From: Botryllus schlosseri
Taxonomy: Eukaryota
Assembly (NCBI GenBank): GCA_051294905.1
Contig: CM119378.1
Location: 1,984,001 to 2,048,000 of the forward strand
Reading direction: 5' to 3'
DNA length: 64,000 nt
A program made the position numbers and the translations under genes. Under the pieces are notes generated by a model. That model saw nothing but the letters and a program-made list of their open reading frames with translations, did no database searches and was not told where the DNA came from. This document shows positions 201 to 58,046 of this stretch, one piece after another (position 1 is the first letter of the stretch; each line of letters starts with the position of its first letter).

Positions 201-3200
201 CTGTACGCGAAAGAAAGTGCAGCTCGGGAAGAACATAAAATGAGATAATTTCACAAAATATCGGCCACACTCACGTAAGCATTTGGGAGTTGGCTTGTTC
301 CACGCCGGAGTCTTTCTCAATCTCAGGCATGTCGCTTTGATACTTCCCACGAGCTTGAAACCTTGATTGCACTTGAATGTGCAAACAGATCGTAGCTTAC
401 TACCCCTTGTACAAGTGACTCGGCCGTTTCTTGGTTCATCCGGTTCGGAGGCGCACCTCACTGGTAATAGATACATAATTACGTTCTGGCGTTTGGCTGC
501 ATATTACACCGGGAAATCCAGATTAACAATAAACACTACCGTCATTTTACCTACACTACGTATTGGCTTTTATTTACATATTACGTAATAAAATATATCG
601 AACCGTTACAATATCTGTGTCGTGGTGCATCATTGTGTACTCAAAGGTTACGGGGGCAATCAGGGCAACGATTAAAATCGCGCGGCTCGCGCTTGAATGA
701 CTTTGCGCCATTTGTTATTGCCGATACATCTGCAGCTTTTAAGCAAAACCGGCATCGGTCTGTATTGATTTTGACGGTGTTCCACACTGAGATGGTTGAC
801 AAGGTTTTGTAAAGCCTACACATCTCGATGATGTCATCCAACACATGTGCCAAGTTTCGAGGTCGTAACTCAATGATTAGCGGGTCCACAAAGCATAAAG
901 GGCAATAAACTTCATAACTGTGTGTCAAGCAAGACAATAATGACAATATTATTATTAATAATAATAACTGCTATTGTCCGGACGTATTTCATGAATAATC
1001 CGACTGTTTCATGAATAATCCGTTGCGTGTTATATGCCGAGGTATTGTAAAAGTTTATTCAGCGGACAGGTATAGTTAACCTGGTTTAATAAATTAAATT
1101 ACTCACCAACACATGTAGGTTTTGCTTCACCCCAAGATGACTTCCCATTGATGGACCTGCAGGTCGTCCACAAGTCCCCGTCTAATTGATACCCCGCGTT
1201 GCACCGGAACGTACATGCAGAACCTACTTGGTTTCTATCAGTACAAGCCAAGCCTCCGTTTCGTGGAGATTTGGGAGTGAGGGGAAAGCACGGTGCTGTT
1301 CGTAATACAAATCGTTTTAAAAGTCTCCGATTCGTTACCGTGTCAAATACACTGCCCTACCGACACACTCTGGAGATTCCTTACTCCATTTCGGTTCGTC
1401 CCCATCGTCCAGGCATACAGTTCGTCGGTTACCGGCGAGAGATAGCCCGTTGTCGCATTGGAATGTACAAACAGAGCCAGCCTTATTCGAGTCAGAACAC
1501 ATCACTCTTGCATTACGAGGCACGATCGTGGATACACGTGAGCAGTCACCTTGATGGCGAAAGAATAAAACTGTTTTACAGGCGGCGGGCGTACTGTATA
1601 GCTCACTTCAAATAATCGTATTCATGTGAATTCATATTGATTGGAAGAGACACTTGGATTTACACAACTTCAGTATACAATTGAATATCATATTCATATA
1701 TTCCAATAGACTCGAATATTTTCGGCTGACGCTCGTCAGGGGTAATGGTCAGCAACTATAGTATAGAGAATTCAAAATATTGTATATCAACAATCGTATC
1801 AACGACGTCACTACCAAGCTCCATATTGAGTTTCTTACCCGATCAGATCATCAGTACTCTATATTCTGTATGCACGAGGGTCGGGGGTGCCTATATGGGG
1901 TTAATGTTTCTGCGTCTAAGACTAAATGAAATCCAACTTATACAAGGTATAGGCCTGCGAATACTGGTTTCCAGAATACAGTTTGTTTCAAATTTGTTGG
2001 TACCTTGCTCTTCGACCAAAACACCCAAAAATGACAAATTGACAAATGACAAATGACTTATTATTACATGTTTTAAATTGTGATTGATTTCCATATAAGT
2101 TGATCTTTAAGACACTCACCGATACATCTCGGGGTCGGCTCATCCCAAAATGCTTTTATCCCTTGTCGCACACATCTCGTTTTTCTGCTTCCAGATATAG
2201 AATATGTGGGATCGCATGTATACGTGCAGATAGAACCAATTTCGTTTTCTTTGTTACAGCTGATCGAACCATGCCTTGGCGCTTGCGGAACAGCGGGATC
2301 GCATTTTCCTAAAATAGTATTCCCGAGTCATATATGCATAAAAAAGAAATTATTTGGGTTAATGTACTGATCTCAGATGATATAAAAGGTCACACCTTTG
2401 GAATTGTGCTTAGGTCAAGTGATTTTCACCTTTACTGAACTGGCGAACCCTTTCGCTAATCTGAACCACGTATTTCTCCGAGTCACAAAAACAGTAATAT
2501 GCCACGTTACAAATCCAATACATTACCATGCAACTGCATGGCGCACAAAATAAACTGTGCATCAACGAAAACTTTAAAAAGCGACATAACAAAAGGATGA
2601 AAGCATAGCAGAAACAAAAACAAATTATTATAATGAATAATTGCTACAATTCAGAGGGACTTATGCAATACGAGTTCCTTCAGCCAACCCCGATTAAGAA
2701 TCATTGACTTATAGGTACTTACGAACACAGCTTGGCGGTTTGACGTCCCACGACGCCTCTCTACTTCTTTCTATGCACCTCATCCTGTTACTTCCAACGA
2801 GCGTATATTCCTGGCCGCACGTGAATAAACAAATGGATCCAACCGCACTTCCTTTCGAGCACGTAATGTTGCCGCCATTCGGTGGGTTCGTGGGTTCATC
2901 TCCACATGTTGCTGAGAATCATCAAGCATAATTTTACCAGAGGGAGAGTATTTCAATATACAATTTAATAATGTATTCATATTTATATGACAGCATGACG
3001 GCATGGGTAATCGTCAGCAAGTTTGGTTGTATCATGATGATAAATTTAAACTAGACTTTTAACTCATATTGAGTTGACACAGCAGCCACTATTAATATGG
3101 AAAGTCATGCGTGACGGCATCAATCGTCATCGTACAAAACTAAACTAGAGAGGTATCAGCCCTAACTCACACCTATGCACGTTGGAGTCTTTTTATCCCA

Positions 3201-6200
3201 CGTAGCACCAATGAAGTTCTCAGTGCATGTAGTGGTACTACTGCCGAACATTGTAAAACCAGGCTTGCATCGAAAGGTGCACACGGAGTCGACCTCGTTT
3301 TTCTTGTTGCATACCACGACGCCATTCGTTGGAGGAGGGGGTGTCATTGGCCTACAGCGTGCTGTAAATAGATTTGCAGAGTGCAGTTCGATGGTACAAT
3401 GTAAAATTTAGGCAGGAGCTGATAAACCGGTCATCGGTTAGCGGAAAATGACTAACGACGCTACAAATACAGTCCCCTCAGCTTAATTCTCCACTGCAAC
3501 TACTGCAACACAAACCTTCACACGAAGGAGGCGGATTGCTCCAACTTGCTCCATCCTCTTGTTCGACACACCTTGCTGTTCCCTCGCCCGTTAGAACATA
3601 GACGCGGTCGCAAGTAAATGAACACCAAGATCCTATTTCGTTCTCCCGCGTGCAAGATATCTGTCCTCTCGTGAGCGATGTTAGCGGTGGACAACGTGCT
3701 GAACAGAATGATAGTGAGATTAAAAAAAAAAAACATTGCCTTGACCAACAAACTGCACTCAAATGACTCGGTGTCATAAACATAAACGATATGAGAAAAC
3801 TAGCAATTCCATTGCGGTAAGCATTTTGGACAATACAACCATGCCAAATCGATATTAAAGACGATTCATAATCTCACTCTACTAACCTATGCATTTGGGT
3901 AGTGGATAGTTCCATCGCGCTTTGAAATTCTCTTCAACGCACTCTATTTCCGATTCTCCCTCCACCGCAAATCCATCATCACATTCGAACGTACATACCG
4001 ATCCAAGCTCCTTGCCATTTGTGCACGACACCTGTCCTCTTCGCACGAACCGGGGATGTCTCGCGCATCGCGCTGAACAATTAAGTCACATTAATTCATT
4101 CATGCTTTGATTGATGATCGGGAAATATATAACTGACTCGTATTAAAATATGCTTTTAGCAAAGACAAACAAAGTGCAAACATATAATTGGTATACATGC
4201 GATGTAGTATCGCTTTTATGAGATATTGCTAGGCATTTTGAGAATGCTGTAAATGAGAGGTTCCCAAGCTGAGGGCCATCAGCCGTTTTCAGGTCGCAAG
4301 GAAAAATTATCAAGTTTTTAGGTCTATAGTACTATGCATCAAAAGAAATAGAAAAAAAAACAATAAAATTGCTAGAACAGCAATAAGTTACTTTTGGATC
4401 TTGAGTTTACTTCCCTCCATAAGCCACCAAACCAGAAATTAAGACATTTTGGAAACAACCATCACATTAACTCAATATGTAATAACTAATCAATGTACTG
4501 TTATGTTTACAGTGTGTGTATACTTCAACTACGTACCCTTTACTGTATAAACAATTTTTTAAATTTAAATACCGTATCTTCATTTTTTCTAACAGTTGAA
4601 AATAGTAGGGGGCCAATGTTTTATTTTTGGAATTTCTTGAAAGGCCGACGGTGTAAACAAGGTTTGGAACGCTTGCTTTAAATGGTATAGCCTTTCGACC
4701 TATGTGTGATAATGCGACTGAAATTCTATCCAGTGACTTACGATTGCATCTTGGTTTCTCTGTACTCCACGCTGCACCAATAACCTGTTCGGCACACCTC
4801 GCCGTATCTGACCCAGCCAGCGTGTATTCCGGATCACATCCAAAAGAGCAAAGGGACCCAATTTCGTTGCCGTCCGTGCACGAAACGGTGCCATTGTTCA
4901 CTAGCAGTGTTTCAGTCTTGGTGCATCTCGCTGAAATACGGAATTTAAGTAATGAACATTTTGAGCGATTCAGAGGTTAATTAGGTAATAAATTACAATA
5001 AATTAAATTAATAAAATACACCACGTGGCTTTGTGAATTATGTGCTTCAGAGTACGTGAGCACATGTAGAGGTATATCCAGACGTGATCAAAGTAGTCCA
5101 CGTTGCTACTCAAGTAGAAGTAGATTTAACGCCCTAAATTTCTACCCATTTGCGAGTATAGAAGTAACGATTTCGTAGATGTACCAAAACTGCTGCAAGT
5201 GGAAGTAGATTATGAAAGCGCTGAAAAGTATACGAACAAGTAGTTTTGTAAAGTAGATCTGGTCGAGGTGGCGTATACGTCTGTCAGTTAATCGGTGGTC
5301 GCTAATTTTAAGCTCGAGATATTTTTATCGCCTCCCTAATAGCTGGAGGTCATCATGGATGAGGTAATTCTACGTTTCCACGACACCCAAGTAGCTTTAT
5401 CTACTTGTGTCACTTACTCAAGTAGGCGTTATCTACTTGTATCACTTACTCCAGTGGTTTTGTTAGTGTGCTACTTCTATATATTTGCACTATATGTACT
5501 TGTTCTTGTGCGACTTCCAGATTTACTACATATAAACTTTGAATTACATAGTTCTATCTACTTGTTTCATTTAATCAGGTGGATTAGCGACTTGTTTGAA
5601 GTATTCAAGAAGTTTTCCCTGTATAATACGTCTACTTTACCGGATTGTAGTACTGAAACACCAATTTTTGGCCTACTTAATACTGCCAGGGGAAAAGCAG
5701 TCTTGGGATTCACTTCACTTCAACGACGCGTTGTTAACAAATTACGAGAGTTCATAAATAAGTTCAATCTGCGTATAGTGTGAAGCAGTTTCCCACGAAT
5801 GACAGTACAGTAGGAAGAAAATTATTTAATTCAGTCTCACCGATGCAAGCAGGGGGTGACGAAGTCCAAGATGCTCCGGCCCCTCGTTGCTCGCAAACCA
5901 CGGTCTCGTCGCCGACTAAATCGTAACGGTGCTCACACGAAAAGGAGCAGGTTGATCTCAAGTTATTTTCGTCCGTGCATTCTAGGTTTCCGTTCGCCGG
6001 AGCCTGCAGTTTGGAAGGTTGACATGTCGCTGGAAATGGAAAAAAAGCCAAGAGTTCAGTTATGAGCGGTACTGGGCACGGTAATCCGAGTAATCGAATC
6101 TACATTATCAATCGTAATGATTCCAATCGAGTAGCGAAACCCGATATTTTGAGTACCGAAATTATACGCCCCTATTTCCACCAAGAGGTATATTATCACG

Positions 6201-9200: not shown

Positions 9201-12200
9201 ATACGATCCGTAGAGCAACCTTGACCTATGGAAAATAATTGATGTAAATTTATAAAATCTCAGCAATAAAGTCAAATTGTCGGAGAGGTCAGACTACAGA
9301 ATTGCGGTAAATGAAGAATTGGCGAGGTTTCAAGAGATAGACTTGATTGAAAATGAAGAACTCAAATTACAGAAAATATGCTGAAATATGCTGATTTTTT
9401 TATTCCAAGTATAATTCAGTTATATTATTAGATTAAATTCATTAAATATTAAATTATTACTAAATTCGTTGTTGTTGTTATTATTATTATTAAAATGTAG
9501 AGGAAAATATAGTGACACTTCTCGCATTAAAGAATTTCGCGTCACCGCAACGTATACGCACTCTAACCTGCACATTATTATTTACAGAACATTACACGCG
9601 GAACGACAAAAAATACACCGTCTTAATGTTACAAAACTAGTTTTACCGATTAGAGTTAGCTACAGACTCCTCAGTTTGAGTATTCATATTCATTTGCATT
9701 GTCAAATAACGCGCCGCGTTTCCTTGACGTATTCGATGACATCCTCCATCGTGTAGGCTATTTACTTGTCAGCAGTTCCGTTACACTAAAACCAGTATCG
9801 TTTCGTATAGAGCGCTTGATCTTAACATGTTGCCTTATAATCAAGCAACCTATAGGATAGAATGTCTTTTTGTTCGAACTGCGCGATCGTGGTAATTGAA
9901 GATCATAAATCATAATAATCAGATGAAACTTACCAATGCAAGTAGGTGTTACCGAATTCCAGAACACTCTATCTCCGCGCTCGACACATGAAACTTGTTC
10001 GTCGCCCACCAAAGTGTGGTCTTCGTAGCATGAAAATAAGCATTCTGACCCCAGCTGATTTCCGTGGCTGCAGCTAATCTCGCCATTTTCTGGACGGGAC
10101 AGCGATGTGGCGCATTCAGCTGCACAAATGAATATATGCGTGTCAAAAGCAAATTATTCAACATCCAATTATATATAGATTCACAGAGACTCGAGCAATC
10201 TCCCTGCAGATTGTTATCATGAATTAATAATGACTGAGCGGCACTGCCCTCTAAATATGGTGTGGTTTCAACTAGATGTTGTAACTGTGAAAAAATATTA
10301 CCAGCATTCTTTATTCTTAGAAAGTCACCGTATTCGAACTGCAGCTAAAATATGTTCAGGAGGTATACCATTCACTCAATCTCTGTGGTATAGAGATCAG
10401 ACTTATAGAAACTGCTGGATCTTCAAAATGCGTAACTAGAACTAGGACTAAACGACCTTCGAAAATCCGCAACTTCACAAACTAAAACACAACTAACTAT
10501 CGATTCAATTCCAAAGAAAGTCACTAATTTTTATTTTATCGGAATCGCATCGGCTAAAATGGGAAGAATTTTGATCAACAAATCTCGCCCCTGGCTAAGT
10601 CACTGTTAGTAGCGATCACTGTGAGCTAACAATGACTGCAATAACACCGCACAACAGATCACCGGTATCAGGATTCAGGCCCAACGACGACACGTGTTCT
10701 CTCTTTGTTCGGCAATAATTCTCGTTAGAAATCGCACGTAGAATTAGAACTATGCTCACTTTTCAAAATCCGCCACTGGACTATAACTAGAAGTGCTTTG
10801 AAAACAGTAGTTATATAGATGACCGTCAACTATCTCGATTGGTAGTTTGTAAAAGTCTGTCCTCACCTGTTGGCTTAATTTCAACAACAATCACTTACGG
10901 ACGCAAATTGGCATCTCCGAGCTCCACACCGGTCCTTCTCCTCTATCTATGCAAGCGATGGTGCCCGATCCTTTCAGGGATAATCCGTCTTCGCAGCTGA
11001 CATGACACACCGAGCCCATTTCGCTGTCTCTCGAACATGACACTACTCCCTTGTAAGGTGGGAACAGGGCCGGCCTGCATGTTTCTATTCAAAATTGAAC
11101 GGAATGCGTTATTTCAATGCAGATGCAGCTCGTCAAAAGAACTAGTAGGCCTGGAGAATCGTTTAGCATAGCATTTAGTGACATTTTTTTCGGACCGCAT
11201 ACTCCTATTTGCAGAGTTAGTCAGCAACTAAATATTTCTACATTTTTGAAGTTGGTTTTCTCTTGTACTACTTACTTGTGCGGCTTGGTTTTAGGCAAAT
11301 CTATTTGTACGAAATTGCGAAATTTACAAATACACAGTGTTAATTCTGCCTTTACTCGAGTAGGAACACTCACTGCTTTGACCAATGCCAGCCCACGACT
11401 AGATCTACATTTGTAACTACTCCCAAGCGTATAGCCTACATGAGGACTTTTCAGGCCGTGACATTAAAACTCCATTAGAAGTAGTTTTAACATAAAGTGG
11501 GAATCGCTGATTGAACTTGTAGCGTGGTAGGAATGTATACTGCGTTCATTCTACTTCTTCATGAGTACGGATACTGGGTACTCATCTCTGCTCATACCTT
11601 GACATATCGGAGTCTCCGAGCTCCAGATCGCTCCAGTACCCCGCGAAACGCATTCTGTATTTTCCTGCCCGGATAGGATGAAGCCGTCTTCGCACCTGTA
11701 CGTGCACATCGATCCTATTTCGTTCCCGTCCGTGCATGTCGCGAATCCGTTTACGGGCGATACAGGCAATGTAGGATAGCATGTTGCTGGAATAAAATGA
11801 ATGAATCCAGTATAAGCGTCGATGGACCCGGGGTTGTAATGACTCGAGTCGCAATTTGTCGTTTACTAGACATGACTCGATTCAATTTATAAAACTTGAT
11901 TCAAGTATCGTGTAGCAGGGCCGATACATGAACAATAAACCCAGAAACTGCCTTCGATATATTCGAATAAAAATGTTTAGAGTGAGAAAAATGAGTATAA
12001 TACGAATGCGAGGCCTTAGATATCACCCTAGAGTTTCACAGAAGTGATTTGAACCTGACTTGAACTCGATAAAGAACAGTGGACGCAATGACTTGGACTC
12101 GGACTCGAGTCTTAACAAAATGACTTAGATTCGACCCACTGATCCGTGACTCGACTCGGTGCGAATTGAAAATGACTCGACTCGAGTCAAAACTAAAAAC

Positions 12201-15200
12201 GTAAAATTGACTCGTGACTTGGTTACGCTACTGGCTTGGACATCGCCAAAAGTCTCCGATTTTTCTGGAAGTAAATTCTGTCTTTGGTATTCGGTGATGA
12301 GATACTTCTACTTTTTCGGAGTAGACAAGTAGACAACTATACTTGCACCACATACTCTAGTAGTTATGAGTTTAGACTACTTACACTTCTACTTGGTAGT
12401 TCTGTTTTGAGGCTACTTGTATTTCTACTTGAGTAGCGACGATGACTGTACTTTGACCGCATCTTGTACTAAACGTAGAGTTGGTCGGTAACGAAGAGCT
12501 TCTTGGAGGCACATAACTTCACTATACATTTGAATAGTATATTCAGCATTATATTTCTTGGAGGCGTTACATACCAGAGCATGTCGGCGGCTCCGCACTC
12601 CATCTGGCCCCAGTTCTCGCTCTTCTGCATTCGATTCTGGCCGTTCCGTGCATAGTGTAGCCGAAATCACACATAAACGTACACACAGCTCCGACTCTGT
12701 TGGAGCCAGAGCATATTTTGTAGCCGTGATCCGGATCGACGGGTGTATCGGGCGGACATCGTACTGTGAAATGAAATGATTTCAATTTCGTGGTCTCTTT
12801 CTCGCCATAGAAAGCGCTGCATCAACCGCATAGAAATATGCACAGGCGTACAGCGTTGCACGCTAATCATTGCCACAAAATAAGAATGAATCGTATGAGA
12901 CAGTGACCTGGAACCGGCGTCTCGTTTTAAAATATGCACGGACTGCACCGTTACGAAAAGATATACAAGGGTGCAGTACAGACGTGTCAAGCTCAGCCAT
13001 GGGTTTTTAAACTACGGTCTGTCGAGTAGTCTTAAGGGGTTTCACGAAAGGCCGAAACAATATCAGGGTCGAGACAAAAAAGCCAACAGTACCGACCTAT
13101 TTCGCCGAAACATAGGTAAACGAAGACGGAACTGCTTGACAGCTTTCTAGGCTGTTAATCTACTACACGGAGCTAAGACATGCACTTCAAAGCACATTAA
13201 AGGCAACTGCACTACGACCAGACTGAAATGAGCGAAATAAACTATTTAAAGTAATCGGACATGTGTCTTGAGCAATCACTATACACCAAGTATCGTGGAT
13301 TTACTGCCAATCCGGGGATTTATCAATCCAGCGATTGGGGAGAAGATGGATGTAGGATTTCCCATAGTAATCAGCATATTTTGGTATCCGCGAATAGGAT
13401 CCCTGATATATGGATTTAGCGCAATGACTCGGCATTTTCCTGCTGTCACCGACATGATTCTGCCAGTTTCAGTCCCTTTCCTTAACGCGTATTAGTAACA
13501 TCGATACATTTTCCATGATATATTGGAAATTGAAGCCATTCATTATTACGTAGTGAAGGCTGGGAGCTAACAGTGTTGGGAACACTTTTGAATTGTTATG
13601 ATGATGGGTAGTATGGTGATCTGTTAGTATGTGTGCAATTTTGGTACGTGCCGTATCAGTAAACATGGTCCAGAGGAGCATGAGTTCCTCACAACACATG
13701 TGTACCAAGCCAAAAAAGGATGAATATCACGGGTAGGCAATTGGCCACCACTGCAGCGTGACGTCTTCGAGAAAGGTTCATCTTACAAACGCATGTCGGA
13801 GTCTTTTCATGGCTCCAAATTGCTCCCACTCTCATTTCGCGGCATTCCGTGGTGGTCGGTCCGTCGATGTAATAACCGTCGTCGCAATAGAACGTACATT
13901 CCGACCCGATTTCGTTTCCGCTACTGCAGATGACCCCTCCGTCATTGGGAGCTTGGGGTAATTCTGGGGCACACCGAGCTGTGATTCATAAAATTTGTAT
14001 TTAATGATGGTGAAACTATATTCAGCGTTGCTAGTCAAGGATTATCCTCGGTCCGCAGGCTTTTTTGCGAATCCAAAATTCGCAAGTGTAACAACGTCGC
14101 TTCTACCGGCTGGAGGTGAGCAAAAATTGTTAAGCATCGTCTTTTTAGACAACATAACAATTTCATGGGTTGACAGTGAAATTTGAAGAAGAAATTTTTT
14201 GTTTTAATAAATTCAAAATTTTGAAACACATCTACCAGTTGGAATCGAGCCAAATCTGATGTGTAGCGTCTTTTCAGTCAACCTATCAATTTAAGCAGTG
14301 AATCCCCGGAATCCGAAAAAAGTTATTTTTGAACAACCCTACTGTTCACCACCTCTCGTATATATGGTAAGATTACTAAGATCCGTATCGAAGACCAGGA
14401 AGGTTTCAGAATTTTGATCCGTTATGACGATACAATTAATTATATGGTTGGCGATCGAACGCGATATAATCGCTTCAAAGCCAAACGCTCACACGCCATC
14501 AGCGATATCTCCCGTCGAATGCAGCCGTTGCGATTGTTTAGATTTGATATTCGCATACTTTAATGACGTCGACGATAAAATCTTATAATTTCCTAAATTT
14601 TTCTTCTCGAAAAATTACTGTCGAATTTCGCAACCTCGATCGTTTAATGGTGGAAGTCCGCACGTTTCGGAGAAGATATTATAATTTCATCACGAATAAA
14701 GAAAAAAATAATTTATCCACGCGCCAGTTTGTTACATAAGCACTCGAAATCGCATCAAAATCGACGGCGCAGAAACGTTTCTATGAATTTGGTGCCGTAG
14801 ACAAAAACACTCTGCCAGTCGAATTCAAAAATTTACGTGATCATATTATGACAAAACGAATTGAATAGTATATGTATATTGAAGTAAATCCGTATATTTC
14901 CGTCTGACACATTATTCGGGTTTGCTTCAACACGAGAATATTATTCAATTGCAGGGCGCAGTGGTGAGCGACGGCGCCATTTACGCAGGCGGCTCGGATT
15001 CAAGTCCCACCATAGGCGGTTATTGATTATTGATTCTTGACATTCTGCTCCTTCAAGAAGCTCTTCAAATACTCATAATATCGTAATGATGATATCGAAC
15101 TCGTTTCCACGCGCGTTTTATAATATATTGCGAATGCTGTATAGCGTATTAGTCGCGTATAACTTGTGTTGTGTCCAAATTGAACAATTTCTTTCCTGTA

Positions 15201-18200
15201 TTACTTGTTGTCTGGTATGCCTATGTATTTATATTCATTGTAATGAGTCGCCGGTACCGGTCGTACCGGTGCGACAAATAAAAGTAATCTATCTATCTAA
15301 ATTAGGATAGTCTATACATAGTATAGAATATAATTGGCAGCATTGAAATGACATGGTGCAAAAAACCATTCGCAGTTACACGCACCATTTCCAATTGTAC
15401 GTACACAAATACCTGATTTTAACTATAGTGGGACAAGTAGAATGTATCCATCTATATCTCTGCATGTGTCCAGTTTTTATCATTGACTTGACGGGAAGTT
15501 GGTATATATTTTACTCGAATTGCATCTGTTTGAACCGGAAATTCTCGTTTCAAGTATGCGCCTATGGTATTTTCTTACTGAGATACTATCAGAGATTGTG
15601 CTCACGAAACGGAAATTTTAACGAGATATAAAAATGCGCCAGGTCGATATTTCATTCGGCTCTGCAGGGAACAATTGTTTTCGCGTCGTTCAAATAAATT
15701 GACATACTGGAAGTGATTAACCGGAAGTTTCGTATCCCAAAATAGACAAGTGACCAATTTACAAACATCAATTTCTCATTGTTCATACTGTCAGACAGTT
15801 GAAAAATTACAGTCGCAAATTGTAATATATTAATCATATAGCATACGCGCTGATTGATACACTCTGCTTAGCGTGTCGGAACGCAAGCTATAGCACTATA
15901 TTTATAGAGATATCGGCGATATCATGGAATTTTTGGTATAAAATCTTTTTGCAATCAAGTTTTGTCTATGTCCCCGTGGGTTATATGACAAGTTTTTGGT
16001 ATCACGTTGTATAACTCCCAGAGTTACATGAAACCTGCGTATTGGTTCAGTTGTGGCTGAAGACGTTTATTAGATATTGACGATATCATGGAATTTTTGG
16101 TATAAAAATTTATTGCATCCAGGTTTTCGCTATGTTTCCGTGGACTTTACGAATAGTTTTTGGTATCACGTTGTATAACTCCCAGAGTTACATCAAAAGC
16201 GCGTATTAGGTTAATTGTGGTTAAAGCCGTTTAAGAGATATTTGCGTTATTACGGAATTTTCGGTACACAAATATTTTGCGACCAAATTACCTCTATTTC
16301 CCCGTGGGTTAGATGAAAAGTTTCATCAAACACGCGATAGTTCAGTTGTGGTTAAAGTCATGTAACACGAAAGCCCTGCCGATTATAATCGGTTCGCCGA
16401 TACTATCGAATCGATATTACACTTTTTGGAAGAAATACAGTTATCGGCCATTAGAGGTAAAAGAAATCGGTAATTATCGTGACGTCACAACATGATAGAA
16501 GAGAGTCAGAGAGAACTATAATCTGCCACTGCTATACTGGGAATACTGATCTATTTCCTATACAGATGCAATCTTCTATTTTATTTTATGTCCAGGCATA
16601 TCGATGGCTGTGAATCTGTTCCAGTAAATGCTGCGAAGCTTTGAAAATGCGCCTTAAGCTTGATATGCCATATCTTTTGAATATCGGTTAAATATTAAAT
16701 CGGGGTTATCGGTGAAGGTGCAAGTTATCGGCTTAAACGGTTTCGCCTCAGATATCCCATATAATTAACACTACTGGTCAGAGCTCGACATTACGGGACT
16801 ATGATCTGACATGTGTATTTCATCTATCAACACATGCATTTTGATTTACTTACATCGCTAGTCGTTTTGTTATCTCATGTTACTATCCATTGAGTGTGCA
16901 TGCCTCACATCTACGTTCTAAGGCAAAGTCGATGTTTAATTGAAAGGACACTCCAATTCGTTCAAACACATTCCTATATCTTCTCATTTTATCGCAATCT
17001 TGTGTTGTTTTGCATTGGTGAAATTAATAATAAACTCAACCGAGCATCCTGTATATATGATGCAAATATTAATCAATTAGTTTCGTTGATACTGTATGAT
17101 AAACCGAGCGAACAAGAATTATTATGCCTAACATTGCGCTCGCGCAAACACAACCCAAAAGAGCAAACTCATCCTCACGTATGCATCGAGGCGGCTGGAA
17201 GCTCCACTGCAATCCATTGCCGGTTCTTATGCAAGCTGTCGTGTCCGAGCCTTCCAGAAAGTATCCTTCGTCGCAATGAAATATACACTCGGATCCAAGC
17301 TCTCCTTGTTCCGAGCAGGTTATCCCTCCGTGAGTTGGAGTGATATCTTTGGTAGCGGTGCATCTCTCTAAAGAAGAAAAAGCGATCAATCATTTCACAA
17401 CATTCTCGATATCAGCGCTTGTAGTAAAGGAATGCAGAACGTGGCCCACGACGGATAAGATATCGCATTCCAGCATAAATAGAGCTAGAAAGATAAAATT
17501 AACTGGCACGCAGAGATGGTCGTTGTGTCTCACGCAGACGTGGAAATAAAAGTAGCAAGTTTCAAATGACTCAAGAAGAAAAGTATTATAAGTCTAGTTT
17601 TGCCTAGAAAACTGAACACTAGGGCTGTTCAAAATTCACTTTTCATTTTAAATGTTACTGACTATTTTGGAAAATTGTTAGGCTACCTAAAAAATGCTAT
17701 CCAGTAGAAGCATTGCTGTATAATAAATAGGTTCGGATTTCTTTAATAAAAATTTACATAAAAATTTTTCACATTGTACTGACTACCCAATGAAATCTTT
17801 AGGTGGTCTGAAAAAACGATGCACAAAGAATTTAGCTTAATCCCGTCCAGTATGAGCGAAGTGATTGGAGTACAAAATTTTGGATTTGAAATAGATAGTA
17901 TTTACGGTGGGAAATGCTTTCATTATATATTTCAGATCAACCCACCGTAAATACTATGATTTGAAACCTGAAATTTTTAGCATAAATAACTTAGCTTCCA
18001 CTGATTGAAATTGAGACAAATTTATTGTGCATCGTTTTTTTCAGACAACCCAACAATTTCCTGTGGTTTCCAGTAAAATTTGAAAACTATTTATGATTTT
18101 CATTAAATAAATATAAACTTATTTCTTATATAGCACTGCTTCTACAGGTTGGAATTGAGCCATATTTGTTGTACATCGGTTTTTAGGCAGCCTAACAATT

Positions 18201-41400: not shown

Positions 41401-43360
41401 GTTCTATTCTCACCTCTATTCTCCTTTTCTGTCAGAAAAATCTAGTTAGATAGCCTTTAGTGGAAGAAAATATCTTCATCGGTGACAATTGATTAAGGCG
41501 ATGACTTATTACTAAAGTTTTAGGACATACACCGACAGTGACGACTCAATGTCGTAACTACGAATGGTTCCAGTGACTTATTATAATGCTTGACTACGGT
41601 GCAAACTATTTTGGGTGCATGCTTATTCTTAACAACCTCTATAATTCTATCTTGATAGGCTCTGGATGAAATTATGCAATAATGATTTGCACTGAATAAT
41701 AATTCGGCGTAACTTTCATCCTGCGGCGATTGATGCCGAGAAAATAATAAACAGCAACAAGAATGATCAGAAATATTTCCGATAGGTAATCATGTTTAAT
41801 CCGTTGCGCGAAAATCGACTTTTGTACCGTTTGATATTCTGTGCTTTTCGTTAATTATAATTCCATTCCAGTTTGGTTTTACTGAACTAGTTTTAAACAC
41901 AGGCGTTGTTTCCTTCAGGCGTGTAAATAATAATTTAATCGGTCACGTATCCTTGGTTATAGCCCCACAAAATATAGCAAGCCGACAGAACAGATGCATT
42001 GGTTACTGGATGTCAATCACTATGCAATCGAAGATAAAGCCATTTGTAGACGGTTTTCTTTCCGAACATGATATCGTAGGTACTGGCTACCAACATATCT
42101 GTCCTACAGCTATAAGTGGTGAAGTGGTGATGATTGAATAGTATATTCATATCGAAATAAACCCGAATAGGGGTAGGCTAATCAGGGGTTATCGTCAGCA
42201 ACTAGTAGGCTACACCTGACGAGTATAAGCCGAAAATATTCGGGTTCGTTTCAATATGAATATATTATTCAATTATATATTGAAGTTCTGTACCTCCAAG
42301 AAGCCCTTCAAATTCTGATGACGGATATATTTTTAACCTGAAGATTTGGTGTTAGTTTTAAACCAACTTTATCACCGCTATTCTGCAAGTATTCTCTCAG
42401 TATTCAATGGCTTCGATTTACGAATGCTTTAAAACATAACCTGAAATCCCGCAATACATAAAACAGACACACAATGTTCCGTAGAGCACTGAGCTAAAGA
42501 TTGTTGTGGGAAATATGGTAACGTTATTACCACCGACGCCAAATTATTATTAACTCAATCGCCTTTTCTTCATTCGAACGCAGTCGCATCTTCGTTACAA
42601 TATTGCCGAAAAAATGGTACCTTTTTCTATCAACATTTCTCTTCATACTGCGTTTTGACGGATGACGTTATCGCATTGTTGTTATCGTGGTCTAGGATGG
42701 GCTGCACATAGTTATGATATTACGAAATTATAGGCTATCTGCAATCAAAACATAGTAGGTTTATGATTGTGAAGACACGGCGCACTTAGATATCCGAAAT
42801 ATTCCAAGTATCGCCTTCTGACTTGCTTAGAATCATTAATTAACTAGGATAAATTTGCATTTATCATTGTAAATCATCTAACGTTAGGTTTCTTCGAGAA
42901 TATTTCGGAGGTTTCTCTTGCTTGAAGTTGAAGGTAATTCAATCAGTCTTGACACGGTTTGGGTACACAAACTATACATAATCTGGATTTTGATATTTTC
43001 AATCAAAGGAATTTTGGTCTTCATGTCATTGATGTTAAAATAATATCTTGGTGGTTCGCACGTTCATTAGTACCCACACAATTCGATCTGCAGATCACGT
43101 AAGTATCGTAATTACCCCACAAACATTTTTACACTGGTACACCGACTAGTTAACAAGGTAATAGGATTTCGGCGATACAATTTCGGTAATATTATCATCG
43201 ATTACAATCGCGTGTACCTGGTTTGACTTGAAGCGCTGTGTGTGAGTGTAGTTTTCGCAAATTTTTATATGTTGAGATTTACCACAACAGAGTGAGCAAC
43301 AACAGTTTGGACGTTTGTATGTATAGCTGATCATCGTTTCACAATGCTAAGTTATTCCTG
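38420..43360 (-). pseudogene. Heavily decayed, apparently intronless multi-repeat cyclic-nucleotide-binding-domain channel (CNGK/tetraKCNG-like)
   Basis: Hand translation across many stops gives recurring TM, C-linker-like (SSRAYQDRIIEV..KHAP) and CNBD-like (ISCGKRGVKEF..ISDFGSLL) pieces, in channel order and with a ~1.7-1.9 kb period. Confidence 0.35.
42133..42310. mobile_element. Foldback pair of pLTR copies; hammerhead motif at 42212-42245 (+)
   Basis: A disrupted minus copy 42133-42210 abuts the plus copy ACAC CTGACGA GTATAAGCC GAAA ATATTC GGGT. Confidence 0.75.
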
Positions 43361-44028: not shown

Positions 44029-45642
44029 CAGAGTTGGATCAATTGTAATTTGTAATTGTAATTGAATGTAATTAATTACATTTTTCAATGTAATTGTAAT
44101 GTAATTGTAATTGAAGCATTTTTATTTTGTGTAATTGTAATTGTAATTGTAATTTGACAAAAATTTTGCTCAATTACAATTTCAATTACATTAAATTGCT
44201 ATTATGACCTGACAAGCACAACATAAAACAATTGAATTACAATGCATCCTCTTTAAATGTCGAGAAGGAATTTGGTGGATCCATTCGCGGAAGCCCTTGA
44301 CTGCGCCCTTGCGGGCGAAGTTTTTTTTAATTTTTACCGCTATGCTGGCCTCGGCTGCCATTGTATACAATTTTTAGATTACTAACCAACGGATGGATTC
44401 GCAACACGTGACTCACGATTGAATACGCCGAGAAGCGAACTGCTGAGCCGGCTAAAAGCAGCAGAATTGATATTCCCATAGCTGGCGATCCAAGCGTCGA
44501 AATTTGATATGTATGGTCCTAATCGAAAGCTAGTGTCGCACTGATTCCGCAATAAAAGTATATTTCCAGGCAATGGTACCATCCCAATATAGTCGTGAAA
44601 GTCTGGGAATCGGCATTGTTCTGAACAATCGCTGGTCGTAATTGGTAATTGTTGTGGTCATGCTGCTGCAGCGCTCTCACTTTTCAGAACAGTCGGCCTT
44701 AAACGGCTATTTTGGGGCAGATACATTGCCCTGACGAGATTTCATTTTGTATTTTCGGAATTAGTACATCAATAGCTTACGATAAATACCAGATGCATCA
44801 AATTTGGACGCATGGATCGCCAGCTCTAGGACTACAAAGTTTGCTGCTTTTAGCCGGCTCTGCAGTATGTTTGTAGTTGCATTCATCCGTGACTCACATC
44901 TTGCGCATCTATCAGTGGGTTGGCAATCTACCATACGATTTCAGATCACGATGCTGCATCGTTATTTCGTCTGGCTAACTAACCAGACCACTGGATATTA
45001 TATAACGTCTTATCTGACAAAGCACGGTTTTGTTTTCACTCCTCATCCTAATTCCTACGTCCCTCGATAAAAATAATATTATTACTTTAATTATATACTA
45101 TAGACGCAAATCCAACACGTGCATATATTATAATACTTTTTCAACGACATACTGCACCCTATCCTTAATCCTAACCCATAGGAGATTAGGTAAATAACAT
45201 TTTACATTTCCAATTACGTGAGCCATAATTACCGAGCATTCAAAACACGCTTATATTACGCCACAATGACATCTCACATAGCATACTATGTACTTGTACG
45301 CACATGAACGCATTTATTACTACACAATCTGAACTAGACTTGAATTGTTGTTAAATACGACGCTACGGTTGTCAAGGAGCACGGTTGAATTTATGATTAT
45401 TAAATTATATGTTCAACAGCAGCAATTGTAATTGTAATTGCAATGTAATTGAAGCATGCAAGGAGTAATTGTAATTGTAATTGTAATGTAATTGAAGCAT
45501 GCAAGGAGTAATTGTAATTGTAATTGTAATTTGATATTTTTAGCTTGGAGTAATTGTAATTGTAATGTAATTGAAACATTCATGAAAGTAATTGTAATTG
45601 TAATGTAATTGAACTGAAAATAATGTAATTGATCCAACTCTG
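44029..45642. mobile_element. Non-autonomous hAT-type element (1,614 bp) with (GTAATT)n subterminal arrays
   Basis: TIR CAGAGTTGGATCAATT / AATTGATCCAACTCTG; perfect TSD ATTCAGTG. Confidence 0.88.
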
Positions 45643-45704
45643 ATTCAGTGACAATGCCGTGGGTAGATCATGCCTTAACAAATATTCGCTTCCCCTAACG
45701 GCAT

Positions 45705-48923: not shown

Positions 48924-51900
48924 ATGAAGGTAATTGTTGCGGGTTACCCTAAAACTGGAACAAAAAGCACGGCCTCTGCTTTGGCCCATTTAGGATACAG
49001 CGTGTATGATTCGCTGGAAAATGTTATAATTCTTCGGAAAGAATACACGAAAGTGATAAATGAAGGGTGGAAGATCGACGATTTTCGCAAAATGTACGGC
49101 AATGTTGACGCAGTCATCGACATGCCAGCGTGTTTCTTCTGGGAAGAGATATTACAAGCCTTTCCAGACGCTAAGGTATGAATCCAATCAGTTCATGGTG
49201 TTTGTGGTATTTATGGTGCTTTTCGACTATAGTTGTCATTTACACCAAGTCGATTTTCTTCATGTTGATCCCGCATCTGGCGGCATGTAGCACGGCCCAG
49301 TTCTAGGCATTTTGACACACCGTTTGCGCGGATCAGGGGGCGAGGAGGAGCCGAGATAAACCTCCAACACTTATATTGGAATTCCGGATTCGACCTCGGT
49401 CGGACTCGAACCCGCAAGCCGTTGGTGTTGCAGCTGTGGATTATACCACTCAACGCTATTTAGGCACCCCAATCAGTTCAGTTAAAAGTTTGATCATTCA
49501 TCATTTTAAAACACCGCAAGATCTCGATAGCATTAAAAGATAGGAAAGAGTCGAAACAACTTGAAAAAGGAGCACAAGAAGGACAAGAGACGAAAATGAA
49601 ATGGCATATGTCGGTAGTCGACGTCTGAGACCCAGTAATCTCGATCACAGACTATAGTATTTATTCAAGGGTACCTGCTTGTATTTTGACATGAATGTTG
49701 ACGTGCTCGACGACTGTCTGGTTTCTGGCGAAATGGTGTGGCGCAGTGATGATAGCCTATACCAGTGGTTCTCAACCTTTTTGGCTTCGCGGACCCCTTT
49801 TGACCGTCACGGACCCTCGCGGACCCCCTCGAATTTTAGTTAAATTTTAGCTCTATTATGGTGCAACCTTCATCTGTCTTGTGCAAATATGAACTGTAGG
49901 CTTGTGATACACAGCAAAATAATGATTTTTCTTGAAGATAACATCATACTATTTATGTAGAAATTGGTAGACTTTTATTATTTCAAAGCTAATTTTGCTG
50001 CTGTATTTCTTGAAGTAAGTGGTCGTGTCTTGAAAATCCGGGTCTTCGTTTTGATATGAACGAGGAGTGCCGAAAACCATTTCCGCAAAGATAGATGGAG
50101 GCTAATGCAATATTAACGCATAACGCTTCCGACGATACTTTTGGTGTGATCGCAACATTTATGGCACCAAAATGAAGAAACACATATTTTCTGAACATTA
50201 GACGTCCAGCATCTAGCGCAGGGACGGGCAACACACGGACAGCGGGCCGGATTCGGCCCGCAACGGCATTTTGATCGGCCCGCAAAGAGTCTCTACCGTC
50301 AAAGTGAAATCCTAATCTAAAAGTATAGACTAATTTTATGCTCCAAAGAATGGATCCAAGTTTTCTAACCAGAAAAAGACTGGCATGAAACGACTTGTTC
50401 TGTTCGGGTTTACATATAAATTTACGAGCAAAGATTTTCGACCATGATCAATTGAACATTAACAATACAAGGCTGCATACCAATATAACTGCTGGTTATA
50501 TTGATTTCAGGGTTGGAGCGTAATGCTTTGATAGCAACGAAACACTCCTTTTTCATCAAAAAATCAGCTTTGTCGATAGGGCATCCGCAATTAGAATGCG
50601 CCGAATCTGATAGCCAAGCTTTAAGAGCAGGTATATCTTTATCCGATTTATGACGAGTGTTACCCGAAAATATTCGGGTTCATTTTAATATAATTATATT
50701 ATTCAATTGCATATTAAAGTTCTGTGCGTCCAAGAAGCTGTTCCCTGCATTGGGACAAATTATGGAAATACTTCGGATTTTTTTTTATTTCAAACGACTG
50801 TTCACTTATTTGATGAGACTGACAACTTAAAATCGAGAAGGTTTCACAGACATTACGAAGTCACCCTGATTGACGTTACTATCTTCATATATATATTTTT
50901 TTAAATAACCCATCAAACGTCTCTAAACAGCAATATGTTTGTATCAGCTGGTTATCCGAAAATTGGCAATGAAAATGAGTTTCCACTCTGCCATATTCCA
51001 TGTCAGACGATTATTATGCTGATATGAGTCATGAGGTTTTAGCAGTTGTGGTGCGAAACAGACTCATGCTTTCTCAAATTAAAAAATAAAATAAAAATTA
51101 GGTTATCAAACATTTTAAAAATTTAGAGGTCTCGCGGACCACCTGAAATTGCTTCGCGGACCCCTAGGGGTCCGCGGACCCCCGGTTGAGAACCGCTGGC
51201 CTATACCCTATAGAGAGATGCGTTCTCTTGTAATTCGCGCCGAGCATAACATATGGTAAGGTAGCTGGAAGGCCAGTACGGAGTGAGTTGTTTTGATGTG
51301 CTTTGGATTCCGAAGTGAAGAGTGGTTGAATTTATCGGGCGGCGACCGCAGTGAAACTGATACATTCGTAATTTCCAGATTCCTAATATGCTGTATGTTT
51401 AGAACACCAAATCTATTGAGCAGTCGATTGTTGGTCAGAAAACAGGCATTTATACGGAGAATCACGGCAATATTTTTGGCGACACTGTACGAGTCCCGAT
51501 CGCAGAATTTCGAAATTAATATCCTATATGCTTCCGTAAACTTGCATTAATGTCGTACTGCAGGTGATCCTAACCATCCGAAATAGCGAAGATGAATGGT
51601 GCCGAAGCTTGGTTTCACTGTTCAAAGGAATGCATCGTCTCGAAAATCGATTCATAGAAATTTTTTCTCCGACTGCCCGGTATTTTTGCAAATACATAAA
51701 CAAGTCAACCCGTGAGTTTTTTATGCTTCTCTTGAAACACCGATACATACAACACAGGCCAGCATGGAATTCTCAAAATGATATGTTTGGTATTAGACGG
51801 TCGTAGGATATAAGTCCAAGTTTGACCTGTGCGACTGCATTGCACTGTCTGCATTCTAATATACGACTAACTGGTACTATATTTGGGAATAGGCAACTAT

Positions 51901-54227: not shown

Positions 54228-55039
54228 ATGTTGCCAAGTTGATATTTACCGTGGCGAATGACATAGTCGATTATTTTATTCATAGCACTATGAACTTACA
54301 TATTCTATCGCAGTCGTATCGAAGAGCTCATTTTAAAACTGAACCGTACCATATACTTATAAAATCTGCAATGAAGATAGCAAGTTGATATCATCCATCC
54401 ACTATTCGCTAGAGTATCCTGGAAACCGCGTTGAGTATGGGGGCGAGGGTTTAGGCCTACGCCACCAACGGTTTCGAACGAAACAAACAAACATGCTGCT
54501 GTCGCTCTGTTTCGCCGTAACAGAAGTCGTGGTGTCGCAATGGGAAGGCAAACAAAGGCACACATTCTACACAGTGATCGTCAAATCCAAGTCCAGCTCA
54601 TTGTCTGAAAAGCACAAATCCATCATTCCAATCCAGAATGGCTAAAAGCCGTTCAAAATCCACCTGAGCATTGAAAAATATTAAATCTATGTTCAAATCC
54701 AGCTACGTAAAAGACCGGTATCCGAGTCCAGCCGAAATCTTCATATTTCCTTTTCATTTTAAACTCCAAATTCATGTTCATTGCTCAGATATGTTTGGTA
54801 CCTTCCAGAGAGGAATGTAACCGAATGAAGACGGTTATAACTTATAAATACCCCGACGTTGTCAGCGACTTGACTGCCGAGTCGAGCCCTCTCGGACTGT
54901 GTTCAGAAGAATGTTTACAGTTCAGTGAGCATTCGAGCAAGCAAGCTCAAAATGTTTGCTCAGATGAGTAGGCATTGTTAGGCCGGACGACGTTTTATTC
55001 CAGTTCTGGCTTAGGTGCGTATGCCAGTAAAACAGCAAA

Positions 55040-57932
55040 ATGAAGGTAATCGTAGCCGGATACCCGAAGACCGGGACAAAGTCCATGGCCGCGGCGTTAA
55101 CTCGATTAGGTTACAGCGTATACGATGTGTTGGAAAACGTGGTTTATCTACAAGACGAGTATATAACGATAATCGGAGATGGATGGACCACGGACGATTT
55201 TCGTAGAATGTACGCAACCGTTGATGCCGTGTGTGATATGCCCGCATGCTTTTTTTGGGACGAGATTCACAAACCTTTCCCGACGCAAAGGTAATGCACA
55301 AATATATAGTGGAGTGTTTCTTTATATATATTTAGATAACTGACCTATGGATAGATGCTGGACAGGCCAAGACTTTGACATTACTTCACGGTTGGACACT
55401 GGACAGCCAGTTCACGTTAGAAATCAGCATTCTTGCACACTGCAGAACGCCGCAATAGGCCATTGATTCGGTCATTGCAATACGGTGCTCCGATTGTTTA
55501 AAACAATGGCAATTTTCGCCTTTTAGCGGAATTTTGGTGTCTTGCAGTGCGTTTGCTAGGATATAATTAGGGCTGGGCAAAATCGAGTCTGAGTGATTCG
55601 ATACTGAATCACGTAATATGCTTCGAGTCGAGTCGAGTATTCAAGTATCATTCATTATGACGTCATAACAGAATGCACTATGTCAGTCAAAGTTCATATA
55701 TGTATCTTTTATGGCGCAACAAAGGATATAATGCATGTTATCAGTCACATTAAAGATACTTCTGTATTTTTTCGGCCATGCTGATTTCATTGCACTTTGT
55801 AACAATGTTATCGGATGAATATGACTTCAGAAATGTGTTATTTCCAGTAACATTCGTAGCTTTGTACTATATTTCGTATCCTTCGATGCGGCAAGTCATG
55901 GTTTCAAGCCTTACACAATGGAAAATAGTATCAAAACTACAATTCTCGTTTATAAATTAACTTTCAGTGGCGATAAGCGTGAAATTTCAGTACTTGAAAA
56001 AAACCGTCTTTTACTACTCGACTTGAATCATTAAAACGAATACTCGAATCATTGTGCCCAGCCCTAATTATAATAGGCCTATATATTATTGGATTCAGTG
56101 CGACAGTAGCTCTTGTTCAAAACCAATGTTACTTAACTTATTGCTCGGGGGTCGCAAACTATTACATTACCACATCTGTTTACGAAACCCGCCAGAATTA
56201 CTAGAACTGTCCGGCTGCCCAACCATATGCAAAAATGCATCCATCCATAGGCTAGCTATCTATATGGTTTGTCAAACTGGGCGGCTTGGGCGGGAAATAT
56301 CAAAGGGTCCATATTGGAGTATAAGGAGATGCACCTAGCTGGAGTATGGTTCCTACACGGCATATGCGCACCATCACCACCGTCATTTTAGGCCCTTTTT
56401 CACTTTAGGATCGAGTACATGTGTGTATCCTTCGAGATATCAATAATAAAATAATTATCGCAATGTTTCAACAGTGTACAGAGTGTTGTAAAGGTATTGC
56501 CAAAGAACTATATATGAATTCACGATATCAACATTACTACTGTTAAGAGATATCGTTACGAACTACATAGCCTTATTTAGGTATTTATTGGACTCTCTCA
56601 ATCTCATGAGAGCTGCGATACATCGTTTCGGAGATATGCTACTGTACCCGTATCATCAACCCAAAGCGATCTAAGCATTTTTTTCACACGCAGATCATCC
56701 TCACATTAAGAGATGATGAAGATGTGTGGTGGAAAAGTGTGATGAACCAAATAAAAGCATCAGATGGATTTCTTCCGAGAATGATCGAGATACTGTGTCC
56801 AACTTCCAGAAGGGCCGCTGATAGTATTATGGGTCCTATGAGTGAGTAAATAACTCCCATATTCATGCAAGCTTGCTAAGCAAGGTACCCACTTGCTTAC
56901 GTAAGTTGGACAGTGTTGGGGAAGGTGGAAGCCATCCAAACTAAATAATCACATTGAAGCCTGACAGAAATTATTGCACCATGCCCGTCGTCGAGTCCAG
57001 GAAGATATGAAGCCGAAGAAAGTGAAATGACAGAGCGCGGGAGATCATTCAAGCATGACAGACTAACACCATTAATAGTTTAGCAACCCGTGGGCTTGTG
57101 AACTATGGCGGCTCTTTTGCCAACATTGATTACATTTCCAGCAAGGGTGATGTTCGGCGGTCAGTATCGAAATCCATGGTCGTTAAAACCAACAACTCTA
57201 AACGAACAACTAGCGAAAAAGTGCTACCGATCGCACAATGCTTATGTTATGGAGGTGAGATTGTATGTATTTATTTGCCTTCTCCGTACTTACACGTAGG
57301 CCTACTCCCATACACATATTCCCACAGCACTGAAACAAAGTGCAATGAAATATGTATTTGGTTCTTGCGGTCGCATAAGATGTGCAGTGCATACCGAAAC
57401 TCTCCGTGTCGCCTATGTTTTTGAGTGAAATGATGGTGGGATACTCTAATACTTGATTTTTCCCAGCCGTGGCTTTACAGTTTGGGCTAATTTTGATTTT
57501 TGAAGATACACCGGTTCGCAAAATATTTTGTTGAAGAACCACTAACTGACGCTACTCATTTCTGTCTCGCTGTTCCACTTCACGATCATTACACTCATAC
57601 CACTTACTCACCTCCAGACTGCTCCTAAAGACAAACTCCTCGTCTACAAGTGTTCCCAAGGATGGGACCCGCTATGTCAGTTTCTGGGCGTACCAGTACC
57701 CGACGAACCGTTTCCCAGGAAGAACGTGCGTGGCAACGTCGTGAATGAATTTCAGGAAACTCCCATTTTCAAGCAGCTGCAGAAGGAGATGATGGTGTCT
57801 GTTTTAAAGTTAACTGTTGTCTCGGGTCTGATCACGTATTGCGTAGTAAAATACGGCCCTGTCAAAATTGCCGAGACTGTCTACGATCAAGCGAAAAGCA
57901 CGTTGCAAAAACTTCCGTTTTGGAAACTTTGA
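55040..57932 (+). pseudogene. Sulfotransferase paralogue B (exons 55040-55290, 56694-56841, 57142-57254, 57618-57932); 1-nt deletion in exon 1
   Basis: Exon 1 is 251 nt vs 252 nt in A and C (AAA-CCTTTCCC vs AAAGCCTTTCCC at ~55273). The other exons are open. 275 aa if repaired. Could be an assembly error. Confidence 0.8.
55568..56066. mobile_element. hAT-type MITE (~500 bp), copy 1
   Basis: TIR TAGGGCTGGGCA / TGCCCAGCCCTA; partial TSD GATATAAT/ATTATAAT; colinear with 60101-60599. Confidence 0.85.
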
Positions 57933-57939
57933 ATTGAGG

Positions 57940-58046
57940 AGACTCTTTGGAGGCACAGAACTTCAATATACAATTGAATAATTATTATTATAATATAGTC
58001 ATATTTAAATAAACCCGAATATCTCTTGTTGACATTAGTCAGGTTT
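57940..58046 (-). mobile_element. Degenerate pLTR copy (hammerhead core decayed)
   Basis: CTTTGGAGGCACAGAACTTCAATATACAATTGAATA..AAACCCGAATAT matches the pLTR tail. Confidence 0.65.

Follow-up and report, generated by a model that had tools for sequence, protein, structure and literature searches.

A family of 17 short repeats in a 64,000-nt stretch of the Botryllus schlosseri genome (NCBI GenBank assembly GCA_051294905.1, contig CM119378.1, positions 1,984,001 to 2,048,000 of the forward strand; hereafter the window, numbered from its first letter) probably represents the relics of a Penelope-like retroelement (PLE). Its founder would have carried a minimal type I hammerhead ribozyme with helix II extended by a pseudoknot. 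Animal genomes are already known to contain an abundance of minimal hammerheads in PLE remnants, so there is nothing unusual in the family itself; what may be new is the structure of helix II. The analysis shows the repeat, its motif, the marks of insertion, and a loop-box complementarity that is retained in a relative; we infer catalysis, dimerization, and a role of the motif in processing element transcripts. The 17 copies themselves are neutral, decayed insertions.

Copies were called with BLAST and an nhmmer profile (cut-off, E < 1e-3). The repeat unit was approximately 175–190 nt long, and the 17 copies or fragments summed to 1788 nt, or 2.8% of the window. An earlier interpretation made from the letters without database searches (the sequence-only reading) had listed nine positions of a repeat of approximately 150 bp; all nine belonged to this one family, and the measured unit was longer than proposed. 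The pattern CTGANGAG-N7-CGAAA, with at most one mismatch, matched the window eight times, compared with 0.28 matches expected from shuffles. Seven of these eight matches fell in the repeat, and the remaining one, at 60849, was unrelated. The mean pairwise identity of the copies was 0.76.

The family majority contained a complete type I hammerhead core, ACCC-CUGACGA-G-N7-C-GAAA-AUAUU-C|GGGU, with the bar at the cleavage site. The strand order was helix I ACCC, C3–A9 (CUGACGA), G10.1, seven loop bases, C11.1, G12–A14, A15.1-AUAU-U16.1, C17, and the 3′ strand of helix I, GGGU. The core (C3–A9/G12–A14/U16.1–H17) was exact in the family majority and in the five copies at 1739 (−), 28754 (−), 34524 (+), 36381 (+), and 42216 (+), in agreement with the sequence-only reading, which had counted five copies with an unchanged CUGACGA/GAAA/AAUAUUC core. 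Helix I ACCC/GGGU was complete (4/4 pairs) in four copies: 20993–21121 (−), 28659–28837 (−), 34479–34627 (+), and the degenerate 42133–42209 (−). The full ACCC…GGGU string that had been attributed to the repeat in general held with an intact core at 28725–28758 (−) and 34520–34553 (+) only; ACCC/GGGU was also present in the copy at 21061–21094 (−), where core position A6 is changed to G.

The type I order, the 4-bp helix I, and the palindrome AAUAUU in place of helix III, all three proposed earlier, were confirmed and correspond to the Penelope-type minimal design that acts as a dimer (PMC4209133). In PLE and newt-type motifs with a palindromic helix III, two units must pair (PMC4209133). In the founder, helix I would have consisted of the four pairs of ACCC/GGGU, with cleavage after C17. 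Its helix III would have been the palindrome AAUAUU only, so that two motifs would have had to pair through the double-hammerhead mechanism known for PLE ribozymes.

Two matches in the window, compared with 0.05 expected per shuffled window, were obtained with a minimal-hammerhead descriptor in which the core had to be exact, spacer and helix III short, and helix I no shorter than 4 bp. Scaled to the repeat of approximately 176 nt and to both strands, the chance expectation was approximately 1e-4 per repeat consensus. As a negative control, none of 34 metagenome matches to the 18-base core string had a helix I longer than 2 bp, all of them being chance matches or coding sequence, and the strict motif pattern had no match in the metagenome scan. 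No second hammerhead family was found in the window. An alternative register, in which an upstream CUGACGA served as the core, was rejected: its helix I was mismatched and it had no 10.1–11.1 pair.

Helix II is where our interpretation departs from the sequence-only reading, which described a 1-bp helix II with a variable loop and overlooked a 6-bp pairing of that loop with an upstream box. The family forms no hairpin helix II; the G10.1–C11.1 pair is present, and a 6-bp pseudoknot with the upstream box can extend it. Directly 5′ of C11.1, the loop carries GUCAGC, a perfect complement of the box GCUGAC; this box is located 4 nt upstream of helix I and 8 nt upstream of the core. All six pairs are Watson-Crick in the family majority and in the copy at 1739 (−). 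In the latter, the box-loop stem appeared in both the minimum free energy and the centroid folds, at −7.0 kcal/mol vs. −5.4 kcal/mol for a rival hairpin between the core CUGAC and the loop GUCAG (as duplexes, −8.1 vs. −4.7 kcal/mol). At 28770, where the copy at 28754 (−) has C in the box, approximately 88% of the family RNA reads restored the box U. We therefore consider helix II a probable pseudoknot and not a single pair. Such a helix would comprise 7 bp, with G10.1–C11.1 followed by the six pseudoknot pairs, and its 5′ strand beyond position 10.1 would come from upstream. We infer a geometry in which the single U after G10.1 spans the deep groove in the manner of loop 1 of a classical H-type pseudoknot.

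A relative of the family was found in approximately 230 kb of eukaryotic contigs that had been gathered by following homologues of a hAT transposase nested in one repeat copy (described below). No copy of the window family (hereafter family A) occurred in those contigs, which included three Clavelina lepadiformis loci and three ENA/JGI assemblies. The relative lies at L001:637–690, with a 98% identical inverted partner in L044 (ENA ERZ22157276), and its 3′ region aligns with the tail of family A. Its hammerhead reads, in the 5′ part, box UGACGC, a 6-nt linker, helix I GCCA, CUGAUGA, and G; the 3′ part continues with A, GCGUCA, U (C in the L044 partner), GAAA, AGCUU, A, the cleavage site, and UGGC. 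All invariant core bases are the same as in family A. Two pairs of helix I (GCCA/UGGC) are compensated relative to family A, and so is one pair of the helix III palindrome AAGCUU, whose inner pair changes from U-A to G-C. As in family A, box and loop form a perfect 6-bp helix at the corresponding place in the structure; 1 nt separates it from 10.1, and 0 nt from 11.1. When the relative and family A are aligned by structure, both bases are changed in five of the six box-loop pairs. As sequence, the two families have a UGAC/GUCA core in common, and the GC/GC extension is attached to the opposite end. Within the 30–40 nt upstream, a match of this kind would arise by chance with a probability of approximately 0.6–1% if the families are independent; with the 4-bp core treated as inherited, the probability becomes approximately 10%.

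Other hammerheads occurred in the assembly that contains the relative (ERZ22157276). An open reading frame (ORF) with PLE reverse transcriptase (RT) and GIY-YIG domains (VYKIPC..C..YIGETGR..R..EH) at L002:14277–15761 is followed 106 nt later by a canonical minimal hammerhead (15867–15913), in which helix I is ACUC/GAGU, A9 is followed by an additional A, helix II is a 7-bp hairpin, and the palindrome is ACGU. The helix III palindromes were AAUAUU in family A, AAGCUU in the L001 relative, and ACGU in the L002 PLE. Four copies of a canonical type I hammerhead were present at L044:18722, 18867, and 19931 and at L002:9308; their helix I has 7 bp, their helix II has 4 bp (GACC/GGUC), and their helix III is closed, also with 4 bp. 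The three L044 copies, within 1.2 kb, suggest a retrozyme-like family.

Several observations weigh against a pseudoknotted helix II. No compensatory change was seen in the nine copies of the window in which box and loop are both present. Monomers folded into the competing hairpins CCGAA/UUCGG and CUGAC/GUCAG, and monomer folds were not clearly more stable than those of shuffles. In family A, the box lies within a second CUGACGA, and its complementarity to the loop could be a by-product of that duplication. With G-U pairs allowed, 6-bp matches between loop and upstream sequence were found in approximately 10% of chance controls, so such pairings are not rare. Support across families comes from one independent relative, and four of the six pseudoknot pairs of that relative (UGAC/GUCA) may be inherited. 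The duplication, the missing compensation, and the chance pairings would also be expected if helix II were a single pair with a free 7-nt loop, its match to the box being incidental to a local duplication of CUGACGA. We regard this explanation as unlikely. No hammerhead whose stem II is a bare 1-bp stem is known to be active unless a pseudoknot is present (PMC3088659), the box-loop stem was the preferred fold in the copy where it is intact, and the relative, which has no such duplication, shows a perfect 6-bp match of different letters at the corresponding structural position. It lacks both the second CUGACGA and a core-sequestering hairpin. Because the relative keeps only the pairing, the second CUGACGA and the core hairpin appear incidental in family A, and the box-loop pairing appears to be what was retained.

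With a pseudoknot-extended helix II, the family would resemble several known hammerhead systems in part. It shares with the minimal hammerheads of PLEs (PMC4209133) the type I order, the short helix I (4–5 bp), the conserved G10.1–C11.1 pair, a palindromic helix III that makes a dimer necessary, and massive dispersed copies that are mostly truncated single motifs near the 3′ end of the element. The published PLE consensus differs in having a 6- to 8-bp hairpin helix II and an extra base between A9 and 10.1, whereas the window family has no hairpin and apparently builds helix II with an upstream strand. A parallel for the helix itself is a metagenome-derived type II hammerhead (PMC3088659, Fig. 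4), which combines, as proposed for the window family, a single-pair stem II with a 6-bp pseudoknot joining the stem II side to sequence distal to stem I; there, the pseudoknot is essential and compensatory rescue was shown. That form is probably bacterial or phage, is of type II, has a normal stem III, and pairs the tail on its 10.x side with loop I. The window family, in contrast, is eukaryotic and of type I and would require a dimer; its continuous strand would be the 11.x side, paired with a strand supplied by the 5′ flank of helix I.

The non-circularly permuted SGC, CSG, and GCS hammerheads (Eckert et al. 2023, PMC10085705) likewise keep the core and are missed by standard models; their helices are pseudoknotted through a rearranged strand order, a feature comparable to the helix II proposed here. 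In the window family the C-G-S (type I) order is kept and only the 5′ strand of stem II beyond 10.1 would be moved upstream of stem I; because the order is kept, the family is not a block permutation of the kind described by those authors. Naiad PLEs carry an “HHR_core” (CUGANGA-N7-17-GAAA) near their 3′ ends that fits no stem/loop descriptor (Craig et al. 2021, PMC8557442), and the spacing in the window family is 9 nt. No structure was proposed for the Naiad core, and the resemblance is a lead by description only. Animal non-LTR (non-long terminal repeat) retrozymes (PMC7229834; preprint 10.64898/2026.07.22.740005) are, similarly, non-coding units of approximately 170–400 nt with a type I hammerhead and are thought to derive from the pseudo-long terminal repeats (pLTRs) of PLEs. 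They are defined by tandem arrays and circular RNAs, whereas the window family showed neither tandem copies nor back-joints at the cleavage site.

The copies bore the marks of PLE insertion. By the published hallmarks, such insertions are strongly truncated at the 5′ end, bear an inverted truncated copy there, and may carry a tail of 30–40 bp, which is explained by two adjacent internal RT start sites (PMC8557442, PMC11167929). In the window, the 3′ part was common to the copies and the 5′ ends were scattered over profile columns 2 to 117; at the extremes, one copy began inside the core and another 6 nt before it. Three inverted pairs had 5′ ends that abutted within 0–4 nt, and in each pair both arms spanned the same part of the unit. 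The 3′ ends were bimodal and approximately 33 nt apart, with seven copies ending at columns 133–145 and eight at columns 171–174. Because the truncation, the abutting pairs, and the bimodal ends match the published hallmarks, the insertions are read as PLE-type. The unit may be a non-autonomous element of approximately 175–190 nt or the 3′-terminal part of a PLE, and it would have spread by PLE-type target-primed reverse transcription.

The sequence-only reading had called the family a Penelope-derived, mostly solo-pLTR (retrozyme-like) one. The insertion hallmarks support the Penelope part of that claim. Counting against it, no RT or GIY-YIG ORF was found in the window by a Pfam search of the 28 open frames of at least 100 aa (the only domains were Sushi, sulfotransferase, and zf-BED/hAT), and tblastn with the RT-endonuclease protein of the L002 PLE had no match in the window, so that the link to PLE ORFs did not appear within the window. 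Adjacent copies in direct orientation were absent among the 17, no partial direct tandems forming pLTRs occurred in the window, and Tandem Repeats Finder reported no array of the repeat unit there. Because tandem units are absent, the definition of a retrozyme does not apply in the window, and because both the RT/GIY-YIG ORF and the tandem array are missing, the solo-pLTR or retrozyme reading is only partly supported. The missing ORF would also suit a short interspersed element (SINE) moved by a long interspersed element (LINE), or a DNA element of the foldback or miniature inverted-repeat transposable element (MITE) type, unrelated to PLEs; the inverted pairs could hint at a foldback element. 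Such an origin seems very improbable. Most copies are solo, with a common 3′ part and variable 5′ truncation, and terminal inverted repeats are absent. Unlike in L1 twin priming, the inverted partners duplicate the same 3′ region; the spacing of the two 3′ end classes is that of PLEs, and the motif is a PLE trademark (PMC4209133).

The variation of loop 2 among the copies, of which every reported variant was found, is neutral decay of dead copies and not tolerated variation. No copy combines an intact core, a 4/4 helix I, 6/6 box-loop pairs, and the 10.1–11.1 pair. The copy at 1639–1813 (−) is short of one helix I pair, and those at 28659–28837 (−) and 34479–34627 (+) have only 4/6 box-loop pairs. 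Because none keeps all elements, little or no cleavage is expected from the 17 copies today. The proportion of positions matching the family majority was 0.87 for the core, 0.84–0.86 for the flanks, and 0.77 for the loop strand. Thus, in a comparison that had been proposed as a test of the ribozyme, the core of the window copies was no better conserved than the flanks, which also counts against it; because dead transposon copies decay neutrally, the comparison is uninformative here.

RNA was examined in four raw-read runs from the same species, placed on positions 28640–34639 at 80% likeness, with 6–13% of each run read. Both copies in this region had reads in both directions; summed over directions, depth was approximately 60–420× in the three deeper runs and approximately 16–26× in the run X10. 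Between 93% and 96% of the reads ran on into unlike sequence and therefore come from other copies of the family. RNA ends at the UUC site had been suggested as a check. No pile of read ends was found at 28729|28728 or at 34549|34550, and none in the region reached the threshold (at least five molecules and at least one-fifth of the neighboring depth) in any of the four runs; no back-joints at the cleavage sites were found in the reads. The runs lend no support to cleavage in vivo; because the libraries were not end-specific and most reads come from dead copies, the missing ends are weak evidence against it. An active Anolis PLE likewise gave no reads ending at the cleavage site (PMC11167929).

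These negatives bear on the possibility that the motif is not a working ribozyme, being a chance or former ribozyme string whose real role is structural, such as hairpins recognized by the RT near its start sites. The Rfam hammerhead models, too, gave no match at the gathering score, at E ≤ 10 over the whole window, or at E ≤ 10 on an 81-nt piece, a further point against a functional hammerhead. Stable alternative hairpins sequester GAAA and the cleavage site, and mutants of a PLE hammerhead were without effect on insertion in vitro, in the same study in which no Anolis reads ended at the site (PMC11167929). A purely structural role is nevertheless improbable, given that a complete minimal hammerhead is expected so rarely per repeat consensus and that between family A and the L001 relative the invariant core did not change, while the changes in helices I and III and in the pseudoknot were compensated.

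If a strand from upstream does build helix II as a pseudoknot, PLE ribozymes are undercounted by current search models, and hammerheads may be present in some PLE clades said to lack them. Many former self-cleaving sites, and perhaps a few that are still live, would then lie within host-gene introns of this genome. We suggest, tentatively and with more doubt than confidence, that the pseudoknot-built helix II represents a hidden class of Penelope-type hammerheads that take the 5′ strand of stem II from upstream of stem I and so escape Rfam models and the RNAmotif descriptors employed to date. With the same reserve, it could explain the stemless HHR core of Naiads, and in family A the alternation between the box-loop helix and the core-sequestering hairpin could act as an on/off switch.

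Two copies were full-length with a tail. That at 1639–1813 (−) has its hammerhead at 1710–1753, with box GCUGAC and loop GUCAGC pairing 6/6, an intact core, and helix I at 3/4 (GAGU). The copy at 28659–28837 (−) has its hammerhead at 28725–28772, with core and helix I intact, a pseudoknot of 4/6, a 4-nt insertion in the linker, and predicted cleavage between 28729 and 28728. A 5′-truncated copy with a tail at 34479–34627 (+) likewise has core and helix I intact and a pseudoknot of 4/6 (hammerhead 34510–34553; predicted cleavage between 34549 and 34550). The copy at 24247–24387 (+) has the full 5′ end, no tail, and a following (TA)n run; in its hammerhead (24313–24355), G10.1 is changed to A, the spacer is deleted, and the pseudoknot is 6/6 including one G-U pair.

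The three inverted pairs were all head-to-head. In the first, 14858–14910 (−) and 14913–14961 (+) are both 5′-truncated and without a tail. In the second, 36191–36309 (−) and 36314–36446 (+) both lack the tail, and the plus copy has an intact core at 36367–36410, with helix I at 3/4 and the pseudoknot at 4/6. The third consists of 42133–42209 (−), without a tail, and 42209–42313 (+), with a tail; the latter is truncated 6 nt before the core, which is intact, and its box is absent. The remaining copies were more reduced: a degenerate fragment at 2939–3020 (−) that retains the box, with core and loop deleted or mutated; a 5′-truncated fragment of 3′ region and tail only at 12491–12545 (−); a 5′-truncated copy without a tail at 19735–19802 (−) that starts at the core, which is mutated (CUGACGC); a copy with a tail at 50651–50748 (+) that is truncated inside the core, starting at U4; and a 5′-truncated copy with a tail at 57932–58044 (−), in which core and GAAA are mutated.

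A discrete 5′ end beginning with CTGGTGACGTCAT was common to four copies; this start of full-length copies was seen at 24249–24260, 1800–1811, and 23861–23872. It contains a perfect palindrome, TGACGTCA, resembling a cAMP response element (CRE-like), which could be a promoter element of the repeat unit. The copies at 23812–23874 and 24247–24309, both with the full 5′ end, face each other across a 372-nt spacer that holds a 33-nt inverted repeat (24064–24096/24208–24240). A comparable facing pair, with a 304-nt spacer, was seen for the L044 relative.

One minus-strand copy of the repeat was split by a nested hAT/Buster-like DNA transposon of 2696 bp at 21116–23811. The 3′ half of the split copy (20993–21121) includes the tail and a hammerhead at 21061–21104 with A6 changed to G, helix I at 4/4, and a pseudoknot of 5/6; the 5′ half (23812–23874) covers profile columns 2–58. 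The transposon has terminal inverted repeats CAGTGGTTCT.AAA, an 8-bp target duplication TACTAGAC, a zf-BED ORF at 21830–22357, and a 437-aa FAM200/ZBED5-like transposase frame at 22308–23621. The proteins closest to this transposase were 91% identical, clustering with Clavelina lepadiformis transposases. The alternative of a truncated PLE with inverted pLTRs at 20997–24408 was rejected in favor of this nested transposon.

The window also holds host exons and other repeats. Sushi/SCR-repeat exons lie on the minus strand at 168–503, 3481–3873, 4470–4976, and 9761–10153, and a sulfotransferase exon (Sulfotransfer_4) on the plus strand at 57546–57929; the hammerhead-repeat copies between host exons are presumably in introns and intergenic DNA. 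An unrelated dispersed repeat of approximately 180 nt was found at 16616–16750, 28470–28649, and 34033–34213 (79–80% alike), as was a tandem repeat at 15901–16323 (164-nt unit, 2.6 copies, 77% matches) that has no relation to the hammerhead family. Low-likeness RNA reads formed piles at 32640–33039 and 28840–29039 as well, to depths of up to approximately 170×, and these piles probably reflect other high-copy repeats. An AT-rich satellite of the GTAATT type at 44051–44201 and 45424–45611 forms long hairpins; its only matches in Rfam were weak, non-significant ones to miRNA (microRNA) models.

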